DNA of 64,000 nt from Tetramitus jugosus (GCA_937625935.1 OW569357.1:1-64000), one strand, 5' to 3'. Counted from the stretch's first letter, positions 16,313 to 22,072 are shown. The notes: generated from the sequence alone by a model not told the origin. Made by a program: numbers and translations.

Positions 16313-16456
16313 CGATAACAGAAAGGTATCTTGTTGTTTGGCTTGTGTGTGGTCGTGGCAACTTTTCAGAAAGGTATCTTGTTGGGTGCCCAAAAGTTTG
16401 GCTCGTTCTCTGCGTTTGAAGTTCTGCAATTTCGAGATCGGACGGCGCAGAAATCT

Positions 16457-16470
16457 CAGGGGGGGGGAGC
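16457..16470 (+). repeat. Left terminal inverted repeat, preceded by the 8-bp TSD at 16449-16456
   Basis: CAGGGGGGGGGAGC is the exact reverse complement of 21303-21316. Confidence 0.93.
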
Positions 16471-16565
16471 GAGTGTGAAATGGAAGTGAAGAAAGTTTCT
16501 TTCATCAAACAAAATAAACATATGTAGAGTAGATCCTTGTCGCAATGTTCACAGGAAGAGATAGA

Positions 16566-19500
16566 TCATTCAACGAGAGGCTTCTTGGAAGACAGCTGAG
16601 AGTTATCTATTTCAATATCTGCATCTACAGCAGTTCTCTTCTTGTTAGTTCTCTTCCTCTTGTTTACAGGCTGTTCTGATTGTTTCTTCTTCTTATTGTA
16701 CTTGCGTGGTGTCTTCAATGATTCATCACCCGCTTCTAGCAGAGCTGCAGATTCGAGCAGTTTGTATCTCAATAGCCCTACTTGGCTGTTGATATTCATA
16801 GATACATTGAATGTCTTCAACCTTTGAATACACTGCTCTTTGATCATGGTCAAAATAATCTCCCTAGTTAACGTATCAGATTGAACATCTGCTGCTCTCT
16901 TCAGTTTTCTTGAAACAGATGTTGGTGGTCGTGCAACTGTAGTTCCACTTATAACCTTCTCTAGTCTATCTTGAAGTACAGATTTGGTTCCTCTCATATC
17001 ACTGTTCTTCGCGAACAAACACAACTGTAGTTCTAGTGTAGTCAGTTTCGTGATGGCAGTAACAGTAAGCTTGTCAACATCGAATGGCAGTTTATGATCT
17101 GGTCTGATCTTGACAGGATTGGTACATCCAATACACTTACATTCTAGTGTACACCCAATTGAGCACTTACAGGATGCAGAGCAACCACTCAAGCATTTGC
17201 ATCCTGAACCTTTGCTTTGCTTAGACAATTTGATAATTGCGTTTCTCACAAGTTCTTCACTTCCATACTTCTGCAGTAGTAATCGTTGCATCATATACGT
17301 GTCATACCTTGCTCCATGCACCTGACTCAAGTCAATTTGCTCATACTCTTTCATTCTATGTTGAAAGATCTCAGACAGCTTCGCAGTCTTGTTAATAATT
17401 CTGCCGTCATCATCATACACTAGCTCATCTCCAATCAATCGTCTTGCATCCAGCCATATCACATCGTACTCTTCCAGATCTTTGACAAGCTCCTTTGCAC
17501 AGCTACCGATCCTCGATTTATCGAAACTAGAGTTGTATGCAACAACAATGCATCTGCAACGCTTGTCAACTGTCACTAATCTATAGAACGCAGAAACACC
17601 ATTCTCTAATAGAGGCTGTCCAATAACATCATCTGGTGTAATACCATGGATAGCAATACTCTGTTCACTCCATGCTTCTGGTTTGATGTGTGGATATGGA
17701 TTGAATCTGCAAGATAGAATATCATTTCCACTCATACCCTCAACACGAGCAGCAATCTCACAAGGACAGCCATCTGGGAACAACTTCAAGTTCACTGTCT
17801 CACAGTCACAATATGCAATAATCAATGGCTTCTTATATTGTGATCCAAACTGTTCCTCAAAGCACTCGTCACACTCATCATTTGTGACATCACTGCTCTG
17901 TTCTATTTGCATGAAGTGGAACACATCCTCCAGATTATCTACGTAAGTCAGCAACTCATCTGATATTGGGAAGATAGCATCACCTGTAGCATTGCATATA
18001 CCTATTTGTTGGATACTCTCTAGAGTATCATTACTATCATGCAGCATGGTTTCCAAATCAATAGCATCCAGTTCTTCATTTTGTTGAGATTCAGATGCAC
18101 TCTGCTTCCTTTCTTCAGATCTACCCAAAAGAATCTGCTGCATGATTGTGGCTTTAATCTGCTTCACAACATTCTCAGAAGCGGTAGTAGTATAGCTGTG
18201 ACACACTACCAAGTGAGACTCCAAGGCTGTTGGATAGTGAAATGAGAGGTGCGTACAGCCATTAGCCTTTTCTGGACAATCGAACCACACCTGCTTATGA
18301 CTTGTGTTGCAATGTGAGCGTATCTTCTTATGACCAGTAGTCTCACCTTGAGCAGCTAGCTTCTCTCTCATCTGTTTCATCACTTCATCTGAATGCTTGA
18401 TCTTCTTCACCTTACTACTATCCTTCTTGTGAAGCTTTGACCGTTCTATGAAGCGAATTACACATGCATTATTAATTAATGAAAATCCACGAACCTCAGT
18501 GATGGTACACATGATACGTTGGTCACTCTCAGATCGTCCACCCAGGGTACTAAGTTCAGAGGCAGTGACATATGGTTGCATACCTCGGATGCAACAGAAC
18601 AGCAATTCCACTGGTAATGTACATAAAACAGATCTGCAGACAATAAACGTAGTTCCAACTCGCTTCAAGTAGAGATGCATAAGATAGAACTGGTAGATGG
18701 TTGTTGTCAAGTGTCTACTGGTTTGAGGTGCAAGCTTAGAATCTGGGTGTGATGTACTGTTGTTCCAATTACAAATATAGCTCATAAGATTATCCTCATT
18801 GACAGTTCCCAAGGGATCTGCCTTTCCATATAGTTGTGTCACGGCTTCATCTTGAGACATGGATTTATCCATGAAGCAATCATACATCCGTCTAATTTGT
18901 CTAAAATACTCAGCAAATTCCTTCCCTATCTCCTTCTCTTGTGCAGTATACTCATCTGGAAGGTTATTCAATGCATCTTGCACTCGTTTTGAAGTTAACT
19001 CCAACACTTGGTTCATCTTCATGATATCTGGTGGATTGAGCCAACTGTCCCGTATGAAACCTAGAGCATCATTCACATTTGGACTCTTCCTGCAGAGATC
19101 TATCAATACATTCATATGCAGCTTGTGCTGACCTGGTTGCAGATGCCTGTTCATTGTTGCATTACGAGTTGCCTTCGTATTGTGACTAAAGTCGAACATG
19201 TGAAACCACGGTGTCCCATACTTTGTCATTGTGTAGTCGTTCATAAACTTCTGGACAGCATCTGATGCAAGATCGCCATCACTGGATGAAGCTATTATCT
19301 CACATACATCCTTCCTATAGAATAGATCAACGAGCAGCTTCAACTTGGAAATAACAAACTTTGTTCCATTGGTCCTGTTAGGCTTAACCCAATGCCCAGT
19401 ACGAACAGTTACCATACCATCCAAACTCTGTAACATGAATTGAAGAACTTCATTGCCCAGATCATCATCCAGCTTCACCTTATCCTTCTGTACGTACTCC

Positions 19501-20897
19501 TCTGGAGTTAATGCTACACTCCCACCCAGAACGAGATCCAATCCTTCATTGTACTTGTATCTTGGAATAACAATGATTCCATCGTACGATATCAAGAAGT
19601 GATGACAGTTAGATGCTTTTGTCTGAACTTCAATTGCAGTTAAAATCTCGGCGATACGGTCATCATTAGGAGCGCCGTAGCTTCCAACATCTTCCACCTT
19701 ATCCAGAGTATCATTGCTAGGGACTATCAAGTTGTGCTCAAGACCAAGATCTGGTCTATTTACTCCTCTGAGAATATCAATTGCTTTTGCGCCCGCAGCG
19801 TGTCTGAAGTACTTCCAAAATTGCTTGATCTCATCACTGTATCTGAATAGATACGGTTCCTGCTTGATGAAGTTATCCAGTTGATTATCTATGAATCTGA
19901 AAAAGAACCCATGTGTTTCTGACTGACTCAATGCTTGACACATCTTGAGAAATAGAGACTTCTTCTGTTCGAGTAAGTGCGGATTAATATGACTAGCATC
20001 AACATTGTCTGTGAACATAGCATCTAGCTGCACTTGCTGCTTCCTAATCAATTCATTGGCAGTGTAATAGCATAACTGCAATTGTTTGATCTTTGCTTCC
20101 TGCAATGCCAGTGTATTTGTTGATGCAGCGTTTCGCCGCTGAACACTTCCAGATTCAACAGCACTAGCAGCTCGTTGTCCTCTCTGGTCAACGATCTTTT
20201 TGCAACTACTGCATGAGGGACATCTCTGTTGTTTGCCAGTAATAGTCTTGGTACAAATAATTGATCGATAGAATTCTGAGTTATCAACTTGTGTTGCAAT
20301 GATTCCAGTGACAGTCAACAGTACGTTCAGTATAGAGCAATACTTAATAGCATCACTGCGTGGTATGAACCCGGGACAGGCAAAATCTCTCTCTGGCACT
20401 GTAACAGTGGATTCAATTACTGCGGGTGCTCGTGTAGTGTGTATTGCTACCATATTTGTACATCGTAAATTTTCACTAACGAGAGCTTTCAATCCACGTA
20501 ATCCATTACTACCGACAGCATAGACATAGTATGACGTACCATCAAGATGGAACTTATATTTGTGACCAAGCAAATTGAACTTCTCAATAGCTGTTCGTAG
20601 ATGTGAAGTGTTCCATGAAGGCTTTTTAATTGACTCTTCATACTTGGGTCTAAATGAATTCCATTCCACATAGCCACGCTGTTCTACCTCAAGGATCACT
20701 TGATCTAAAAACTGCTTCAAATAATCATACTGTGGAGCTATAGTAGACTCTGCAATTGTAGTAGTAACTGGAGTCATTGTGAAATGTGATGTAGTACTGT
20801 CCCTCTTGTAGCATGCGTGACGTGACGCAGATGTAAAATTCTTAGCATTAATATATTGTTGGCATTTGTCACAGTATCTCTGTAGAGTGAATTGCAT
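16566..20897 (-). CDS. P-element-like DDE transposase fused to C2H2, DEDDh exonuclease, CXC and SAP domains (about 1,443 aa)
   Basis: P-type transposase motifs: ISYDG, LQFMLQSL, SSSDG, FDFSHNTKATRN, LNPPDIMKM and PVELLFCCIR. Exonuclease motifs: CDCET, IHGIT, AYNSSFD and HGARYD. CXC: GCKCLSGC..CKC..C...CKC..CTN. SAP: LTTLELQ...RGTKSVLQDRL. The likely start is accATG at 20897; the frame is open to 21176. Confidence 0.88.
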   Translation of the reverse strand: MQFTLQRYCDKCQQYINAKNFTSASRHACYKRDSTTSHFTMTPVTTTIAESTIAPQYDYLKQFLDQVILEVEQRGYVEWNSFRPKYEESIKKPSWNTSHLRTAIEKFNLLGHKYKFHLDGTSYYVYAVGSNGLRGLKALVSENLRCTNMVAIHTTRAPAVIESTVTVPERDFACPGFIPRSDAIKYCSILNVLLTVTGIIATQVDNSEFYRSIICTKTITGKQQRCPSCSSCKKIVDQRGQRAASAVESGSVQRRNAASTNTLALQEAKIKQLQLCYYTANELIRKQQVQLDAMFTDNVDASHINPHLLEQKKSLFLKMCQALSQSETHGFFFRFIDNQLDNFIKQEPYLFRYSDEIKQFWKYFRHAAGAKAIDILRGVNRPDLGLEHNLIVPSNDTLDKVEDVGSYGAPNDDRIAEILTAIEVQTKASNCHHFLISYDGIIVIPRYKYNEGLDLVLGGSVALTPEEYVQKDKVKLDDDLGNEVLQFMLQSLDGMVTVRTGHWVKPNRTNGTKFVISKLKLLVDLFYRKDVCEIIASSSDGDLASDAVQKFMNDYTMTKYGTPWFHMFDFSHNTKATRNATMNRHLQPGQHKLHMNVLIDLCRKSPNVNDALGFIRDSWLNPPDIMKMNQVLELTSKRVQDALNNLPDEYTAQEKEIGKEFAEYFRQIRRMYDCFMDKSMSQDEAVTQLYGKADPLGTVNEDNLMSYICNWNNSTSHPDSKLAPQTSRHLTTTIYQFYLMHLYLKRVGTTFIVCRSVLCTLPVELLFCCIRGMQPYVTASELSTLGGRSESDQRIMCTITEVRGFSLINNACVIRFIERSKLHKKDSSKVKKIKHSDEVMKQMREKLAAQGETTGHKKIRSHCNTSHKQVWFDCPEKANGCTHLSFHYPTALESHLVVCHSYTTTASENVVKQIKATIMQQILLGRSEERKQSASESQQNEELDAIDLETMLHDSNDTLESIQQIGICNATGDAIFPISDELLTYVDNLEDVFHFMQIEQSSDVTNDECDECFEEQFGSQYKKPLIIAYCDCETVNLKLFPDGCPCEIAARVEGMSGNDILSCRFNPYPHIKPEAWSEQSIAIHGITPDDVIGQPLLENGVSAFYRLVTVDKRCRCIVVAYNSSFDKSRIGSCAKELVKDLEEYDVIWLDARRLIGDELVYDDDGRIINKTAKLSEIFQHRMKEYEQIDLSQVHGARYDTYMMQRLLLQKYGSEELVRNAIIKLSKQSKGSGCKCLSGCSASCKCSIGCTLECKCIGCTNPVKIRPDHKLPFDVDKLTVTAITKLTTLELQLCLFAKNSDMRGTKSVLQDRLEKVISGTTVARPPTSVSRKLKRAADVQSDTLTREIILTMIKEQCIQRLKTFNVSMNINSQVGLLRYKLLESAALLEAGDESLKTPRKYNKKKKQSEQPVNKRKRTNKKRTAVDADIEIDNSQLSSKKPLVE

Positions 20898-21302
20898 GGT
20901 GCTCTCTCGATTCTTCACTATTGTTTCGCAACTCTTACAAACACTTCTTGAGATGCAGAAGTCATTCTCACTGTGATTCAAGAAGATGTTTGGACACCGA
21001 TACATCCCAATCGAACCGTTTTGTCTCGTAAGTTTGTGTACTGAGAACCAACGCCAAGTTCGATTCTTTGTTTGTTGGTTCCACTCCCCCGAAGTCGGCC
21101 CAACTTTCAAAAATAGCACAAGACTTGGCCAAGATTCGATACAGTACAACAACATGGCACGGATGACTCGCAACACAAGGAATACACCTTACGATCAATC
21201 AATATTTGTTTATTGGATGATGAAACTGTTCGTGTGGTGCAATCAATGTTATATCTGCTGTCTTCACTTCTCATTTCGAAACTGGGCCTAGAATCATTTG
21301 TT

Positions 21303-21316
21303 GCTCCCCCCCCCTG
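21303..21316 (-). repeat. Right terminal inverted repeat, followed by the 8-bp TSD at 21317-21324
   Basis: GCTCCCCCCCCCTG followed by AGAAATCT. Confidence 0.93.
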
Positions 21317-21412
21317 AGAAATCTCAATTCACCAAAATCATTGAACAAGAATTTTTTTTCCACACAGAAAAAGAAGCATCAAACACACAGAAAACACAAA
21401 ACATTCATCACC

Positions 21413-22072
21413 ATGGCCAAAGTAAGAAAATTAAAGCATCATGAACAAAAGCTTTTGAAAAAGGTTGACTTTTTGACATGGAAATCCGACGGTGTCAATG
21501 AAAACTACAGAGAACACATGCTCAAAGTCATTGCCAAATATAAACTCAACGGAGAAAAGGAGTTTTTTGAGTAAGTGTGTTTTGCAAACTTTTACAACCA
21601 AAAACAACAACAACATCTCACTCACACACACACGTACACACACGATAGTTATCAGAGAATTGCCAATCAAGTCAATGAAACCATAAAGTCCATTCGTGAA
21701 ATGGACGACAAGGAACACTTGGAATTCAAAAAACAACAATTTGAACAATTGTCCAACAAGTTGTACGAGATGGGAGTGTTGGACGCATTGAACGAACTAG
21801 AGAAGAGACCTAGAATCAATGTCGAGCGATTCTGCAGAAGAAGATTGAGTTATATGGTCAAGGTTTCTCACATGGCTGAAACAGTCACATTTGCATCAGA
21901 GTATATTAAGCATGGTCATATTCGAATTGGTCCTGAGATTGTAAAGGATTCTGCGTTTATTGTGTCCAGAGGTCTCGAAGATTTCATCACATGGTCCAAC
22001 ACATCTAGGATTAAGCACACGGTTAAGAAGTTTAATGAAGAGTATGATGATTATGAGATGTTGAATGCTTGA
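21413..22072 (+). CDS. IMP3: U3 snoRNP protein IMP3 (S4 domain); intron 21571-21648
   Basis: MAKVRKLKHHEQKLLKKVDFLTWK, FCRRRL, HGHIRIGP and EDFITW. GT-AG splicing joins the two frames. Confidence 0.95.

Follow-up and report, generated by a model that had tools for sequence, protein, structure and literature searches.

A recently mobile P-superfamily transposon from a THAP-less protist lineage encodes a transposase joined to a predicted 3'-5' DNA exonuclease

The element and its insertion

The window, a 64,000-nucleotide stretch of Tetramitus jugosus DNA, opens with a telomeric (CCAAAC)n array (1-711), and at ~880-1130 it contains a short tandem repeat made of GGCGGAGCTCATGAGCTCC palindromes. 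Further inward lies the transposon considered here (Table 1), which sits between two divergent genes: a DUF4291 gene starts 144 bp away and, on the other side, an S4-domain, IMP3-like gene starts 96 bp away. In the latter (21413-22072), a joint in run X1 confirms a 78-nt GT-AG intron (21571-21648).

Table 1. Features of the transposon and its flanks, in window coordinates
Feature	Position	Strand	Residues and remarks
TSD, left copy, AGAAATCT	16449..16456	+	Empty site with single copy in another strain
Transposon	16457-21316		4860 bp; perfect 14-bp TIRs, directly adjoining 8-bp TSD
TIR, ORF-3' end	16457..16470	+	CA-G9-AGC, 14 bp, perfect
Subterminal motif AAGTGAAGA	16484..16492	+	Position 28 from end; candidate transposase binding site, short spacing
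Single intronless frame, stop-free	16566..21176	-	1536 codons counted from GTG (21176)
Basic low-complexity tail	16569..16736	-	1481-1536; putatively NLS-like, from sequence
Second helical SAP-like module	16737..16880	-	1433-1480; conserved LTR..M.K..L..G.L.Y; helices pLDDT >90
SAP domain	16941..17084	-	1365-1412
CXC module, TCR/LIN54-like	17115..17201	-	1326-1354; nine Cys
DEDDh (DnaQ-like) 3'-5' exonuclease	17262..17831	-	1116-1305
Acidic linker	17832..18101	-	1026-1115; poorly conserved
C2H2-type zinc finger	18198..18278	-	967-993; C967, C974, H988, H993
P-type transposase core	18477..19859	-	440-900; HTH, split RNase H, helical insertion domain
Putative zinc module, C-P-G ... S-x2-C ... 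C-x2-C	20202..20378	-	267-325; common to distant clade members
N-terminal Cys/His cluster, not THAP	20802..21002	-	59-125; family-specific
Subterminal motif AAGTGAAGA	21261..21269	-	Position 48 from end; candidate binding site, long spacing
TIR, ORF-5' end	21303..21316	-	14 bp, perfect
TSD, right copy, AGAAATCT	21317..21324	+	Empty site in another strain

The perfect TIRs and exact TSD of the original prediction are both present. A groundwater metagenome contig joins 16448 directly to 21317, skipping 4868 bases, that is, the element plus one TSD copy. Because this empty site in the groundwater strain carries a single copy, the 8-bp TSD is proven; by a crude estimate, an exact 8-bp repeat would arise by chance alone with a probability of ~3e-5. 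The exact empty site may represent the pre-insertion state. In two runs of the source organism, the element end at 21316 is joined to a different flank, which maps to an empty site on another contig (C7); there is thus a second insertion, outside the assembled haplotype and known from its 21316-end junction alone. With an empty site elsewhere and a second insertion in the source organism, the element is recently mobile, as had been anticipated. In run X2, loose ends join element-end sequence to flanks resembling 8089-8116 or C35:10019-10046, which belong to a duplicated subtelomeric stretch; they may stem from a third insertion or from an artefact of assembly. Beside the insertion, immediately upstream of the DUF4291 start, an 18-bp direct repeat with 48-bp spacing occupies 16319-16384, where the sequence of the groundwater strain differs and is shorter.

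The original prediction also called for a search for other copies and MITEs. In the genome assembly (26.35 Mb, 56 contigs) the former exist at low copy number: a second full-length element on contig C36 (~50% whole-protein identity, the same architecture, GCAATTTG as its exact 8-bp TSD) plus decayed relics on C26, C18, C19, C38 and C42. Neither MITEs nor a second perfect TIR pair were found there, the short-pattern count being at control level. Three further full-length relatives come from metagenomes; two of them have CA(A/G)G-run ends, and in one of those the TSD copies agree at 7/8 positions. TIRs and TSDs were also sought, and not found, on several short metagenomic contigs. At the ORF-5' end of the C36 element (L014:3176-3190), the outermost 3 nt (TAG or CAG) are missing although the TSD is exact on both sides; in a metagenomic copy from its family, the corresponding end reads TA-G8. 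The loss is due either to over-trimming before the element integrated or to a microdeletion afterwards.

The TIRs characteristically start with CA (CAG9AGC here; CAAG6, CAGGGAGG and CACGGG in relatives), with TA at one end in two families. Inside them, in every element with readable ends, the motif AAGTGARGA lies 48-49 bases from the ORF-5' end (three diverged elements) and 26-28 from the ORF-3' end (four diverged elements), and so ~21 bp further inward at the former. The binding sites of Drosophila P likewise have unequal spacing, 9/21 bp (PMC7776569), and the arrangement here recalls those transposase binding sites.

The reading frame and its modules

The protein is encoded in one stop-free frame, uninterrupted and intronless as predicted. 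Its start candidates are the first ATG (M8, 21155) and M58 (21005), which aligns with the starts of relatives; the first 57 codons show no conservation, and translation likely begins at M58 or M8. Run X1, which has no library record, behaves like RNA, because the GT-AG intron of the neighbouring gene is spliced out and the spacer at 21317-21389 is absent. One X1 contig spans 16076-21316 with zero differences and zero splice joints, which fits an unspliced transcript, although a contig cannot prove a single molecule.

Every motif lies where the original prediction had located it, and the assignments differ in strength. The C2H2 finger is invariant in the family and across 15 distant clade members. 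One or two SAP motifs had been proposed: the first is a SAP domain by Pfam (3/5 family members, best E 8e-5) and by its top PDB match, the SAP of ERI1 (E 0.003), and the second, which has no Pfam match of its own, can be called SAP-like at most. Similarly, the CXC cluster holds in position and cysteine pattern, its nine Cys and N-P being invariant in five elements, with a weak match to LIN54 (E 0.005) and low model confidence. The N-terminal Cys/His cluster has no Pfam match, and ESM Atlas returned none for residues 50-400. In agreement with the predicted lack of a THAP domain, Pfam found none in residues 8-392; among the sequences compared, THAP occurs only in canonical P rows. Its absence keeps the element out of the THAP-type (Drosophila/THAP9) P subgroup.

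The identity of the core was settled only by broader profiles and a fold search. Single-protein Pfam and PDB sequence searches gave a weak RNase_T match and left the core unmatched, a five-member core profile found no PDB match for it, and word-indexed homolog searches, limited by sensitivity, returned few relatives. A core profile search found 135. Among 60 long relatives, Pfam assigned the P RNase H family, PF21787, to 41, the P GTP-binding insertion to 9 and THAP to 3; hAT, MULE and Kolobok families were assigned to none (0/60), and the query likewise has no hAT family. Because the profile of all 54 rows included canonical P sequences, the search was repeated without them, and the sole significant PDB match was 6P5A (E 7.8e-9), which, like 6PE2, is a structure of the Drosophila P element transposase. 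In that alignment D532 (19583), D633 (19280), D662xxH665 (19193-19184) and E857 (18608) fall on the Drosophila catalytic positions. The predicted model (pLDDT 90.8) leads to the same structure by Foldseek (E 1.2e-13, TM 0.71 by target), versus E 7.9e-3 and TM 0.25 for Hermes. The core thus belongs to the P superfamily, as had been proposed. A hAT assignment fails on the Hermes values and on Pfam; Kolobok fails on the absence of 4-bp TTAA TSDs and RR...YY termini, and also on fold and Pfam; and MULE, Transib and Dada fail on fold, Pfam and end structure.

With the P superfamily (Drosophila P, Galileo, THAP9) the element shares CA...TG ends, an 8-bp TSD, an HTH with a split RNase H bearing the D-D-DxxH-E order, a helical insertion domain, internal motifs unequally spaced at the two ends and insertion near gene 5' ends. 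It departs from Drosophila P in lacking THAP and introns, in its 14-bp G-run TIRs (31 bp in P), in its A+T-centred targets, in an end asymmetry of ~21 rather than 12 bp, and in the added C-terminal C2H2-DEDDh-CXC-SAP extension. The GTP pocket also differs in part. In the HMM alignment, three of the eight equivalents are identical (K720 for K400, S729 for S409, D766 for D444), two are similar (M721 for V401, Y765 for F443) and three are changed (F707 for K385, M769 for N447, L854 for D528). The D528 position is not Asp in most of the clade, whereas canonical P rows keep Asp.

The other enzymatic domain, predicted as a DnaQ-type exonuclease with all its catalytic residues, is confirmed by profile, by fold and by five residues in place: D1124 and E1126 (Exo I, D-x-E), D1219 (Exo II), and H1287 and D1292 (Exo III, H-x4-D), at 17807-17303. 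Pfam RNase_T is found in 5/5 family members. A clade profile matches the PolC exonuclease at E 8e-31 versus 5e-7 for ERI1, the nearest solved domains being those of PolC, DinG, ExoX and DnaQ; fold matches include ExoI, ExoX, epsilon and RNase T, with TREX/Plex9 also among them. Across five elements, identity is 62% in the exonuclease versus 63% in the core, and pN is 0.24 versus 0.26, with pS saturated at ~0.75. Judged by these sequences, constraint on the exonuclease equals that on the transposase core, and the domain appears intact and selected. The D-E-D-H-D set is kept in 20/24 complete clade domains, and 3 have DEEHD. Taken as a whole, the element is almost certainly a P-superfamily transposon that is autonomous and recently mobile, from a protist lineage without THAP, and its single protein unites the transposase with a predicted 3'-5' DNA exonuclease.

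Distribution of the fusion among protists

Among the long sequences compared, 28 have a DEDDh domain after the core, and 26 of these had sufficient core for use in trees. Its named hosts are Naegleria gruberi (D2VUG4), N. lovaniensis, Soliformovum irregulare and Protostelium nocturnum, and it occurs in metagenomes too. The fusion is encoded as one ORF in 5/5 family members and as single ORFs in Trinity transcriptome assemblies of the two amoebozoans, S. irregulare and P. nocturnum. The trees were built quickly, have long branches and use few outgroup sequences, and neither fragments nor rows lacking a detected exonuclease entered them. In the core tree, a branch with SH-aLRT 100% separates every exonuclease-bearing core from eight canonical P cores, and the exonuclease tree, broadly congruent, gives the same subgroups as the core tree. 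A fuller tree places 20 rows without a detected exonuclease inside the clade; many are truncated, some right where the domain begins, and genuine losses are possible. The divergent P lineage of the original prediction is P-type and THAP-less as supposed, but its exonuclease is not peculiar to this element: fusion of core and DEDDh domain marks a deep, widespread protist P clade with long co-inheritance of the two domains.

The remaining C-terminal modules are distributed more narrowly. CXC-SAP is specific to the family, with a CXC also following the exonuclease in the N. gruberi protein; SAP is absent from most of the clade, and the protein often stops ~25-50 residues past the exonuclease. Two proteins, P0143 (Soliformovum, 2481 aa) and P0026, have two separate DEDDh-like stretches each. 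Another subclade is represented in the T. jugosus assembly by a distant P-C2H2-DEDDh element on contig C41 (L046:1559-6493). Its ends are TA-G6 and CA-G6, it lacks a TSD, and its frame breaks just after the PS..TL motif (365 + 842 codons).

In N. gruberi, the copy is flanked by an exact 8-bp TSD, and its TIR measures 14 bp or more. A 3.4-kb member is present in N. lovaniensis in nine copies or more; six are identical over the compared 3388 bp, and 6/9 have exact 8-bp TSDs. This 3411-bp element (L079-L087) has 144-bp inner inverted repeats, and its ends differ by an 11-bp insert after a 16-bp TIR. The ORF of two copies runs the opposite way with respect to the long and short ends, and another copy lacks a TSD and carries a long end on both sides; these forms suggest recombination between the inner repeats. 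Of the called neighbours of the N. lovaniensis copies, 13/15 point their 5' end toward the element (p 0.004, naive binomial). Like the copy in the window, the C36 copy lies between divergent genes, and TSD centres are A+T-rich. Insertions thus favour gene 5' regions, where divergent spacers may just offer larger targets.

What the exonuclease might do

Several known systems join related parts. KolobokD, reported from animals, is likewise a C/DxxH-group DDE transposon that encodes a DEDDh exonuclease, for which a role at the 3' ends of DNA intermediates has been suggested (PMC9587614); it differs in its RR...YY ends and 4-bp TTAA TSDs, as opposed to the CA...TG ends, 8-bp TSD and P core here. 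Dada of Laccaria and Ectocarpus, which targets small-RNA genes, has a DnaQ-like exonuclease within its DxxH-group transposase protein (PMC3706591), but there it is a DEDDy domain between the second D and DxxH, in contrast to the C-terminal DEDDh domain here. Because DEDD exonucleases are already known in these sister superfamilies, the present fusion is less surprising than it would otherwise be. In the literature searched, whose scope left out Repbase, Dfam and most subscription journals, we found no description of a P transposase with a DEDDh domain, and the Plex9 paper (PMC10123124) draws no link to transposases.

In Drosophila P, cleavage leaves 17-nt 3' single strands (PMC7776569). By analogy, the present protein would bind the asymmetric AAGTGARGA sites via its zinc, CXC and SAP modules in place of THAP, pair the ends, and cut exactly at the 3' terminus and, on the opposite strand, inside the TIR; staggered cleavage within a 14-bp TIR is an assumption of this scheme. 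After such a cut, the ends of the broken host chromosome would keep 3' single-stranded tails derived from the TIRs, and strand transfer, staggered by 8 bp, would take place near gene 5' ends. The tethered exonuclease would remove the tails at the donor break, as well as stray 3' tails of aborted intermediates, letting the break close cleanly or pass to repair and limiting damage in short promoter regions. Since the transferred 3' ends must stay intact, the donor-side tail would be its natural substrate. We give roughly even chances to this reading, in which the exonuclease trims the 3' tails that P-type cleavage leaves at the donor site. It is supported by the nearest solved relatives of the domain, which are DNA exonucleases and rank far ahead of ERI1, and by the lack of a TIR-TIR footprint pattern in the assembly, a weak blank given the few excisions expected and the single haplotype. 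The shared constraint, the retained catalytic set, the congruent trees and the N. lovaniensis insertions near gene 5' ends also support it. Against it, RNase T-like folds match as well, DEDDh enzymes are able to act on RNA, and canonical P elements transpose without an exonuclease domain.

The affinity for RNA-degrading enzymes raises the alternative that the DEDDh-SAP part acts as ERI1 does, degrading small RNAs or their 3' overhangs and shielding the element from host silencing. ERI1 is itself a SAP plus DEDDh enzyme, its SAP is the best PDB match, and RNase T is among the fold matches; yet the domain order here is the reverse of that in ERI1, the catalytic domain is far closer to PolC, DnaQ and ExoX, and most clade members have no SAP, and we regard an anti-silencing RNase as rather doubtful. 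Trimming could instead act on the element itself, if released ends carried extra 3' flank that the exonuclease cut back to the terminal TG-3' before strand transfer, and such trimming might take the place of GTP-dependent end positioning. CRISPR Cas1-Cas2/DEDDh, in which an integrase is physically joined to a DnaQ-like exonuclease and Cas2-DEDDh trims prespacers (PMC10284694), is a precedent by analogy only, the integrase fold and system being unrelated. The change at the D528 position would fit, as would the shortened C36 end with its exact TSD, the outcome expected of over-trimming. However, DDE chemistry normally creates the 3'-OH precisely at the end, the equivalents of K400, S409 and D444 are retained, C36 is a single event that could be a later microdeletion, and nearly all other ends are exact. 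We consider this reading unlikely, and just as unlikely its broader form, a eukaryotic trimmer-transposase in which a P lineage without THAP and part of the GTP site matures its ends with a fused exonuclease. If true, the latter would amount to a different, possibly GTP-independent path through P-type transposition.

A nuclease that degrades excised elements or single-stranded DNA intermediates, thereby damping transposition or DNA-damage signalling instead of influencing repair at the donor, has been proposed for KolobokD (PMC9587614) and would agree with the low copy number in this genome and with TREX/Plex9 among the fold matches. A selfish element profits little from destroying its own intermediates, however, and the N. 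lovaniensis copies have multiplied with the domain intact, which makes a clean-up role here quite improbable. Finally, the activity is a prediction and contigs cannot prove a single transcript, which leaves room for a passenger or purely structural domain, or a separately expressed product. Retention of the catalytic residues across a deep clade and constraint equal to that of the core speak against a passenger, as do the single ORFs of family members and amoebozoans and the absence of a splice joint in X1 against a separate product; we would be very surprised by either. Donor-tail trimming remains the reading that we prefer.

To our knowledge, P elements are the only transposons that require GTP and leave 17-nt 3' tails, and nearly all that we know of them stems from Drosophila P and THAP9. 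The clade described here offers intronless, recently active, THAP-less P transposases with their own predicted end-trimming enzyme and an altered GTP pocket. It therefore bears on whether GTP dependence and long overhangs are traits of all P elements or of one branch, and on the role of accessory DEDD nucleases in transposons, which for KolobokD and Dada has merely been guessed. That three related superfamilies have each gained such a nuclease suggests a common end-processing problem.
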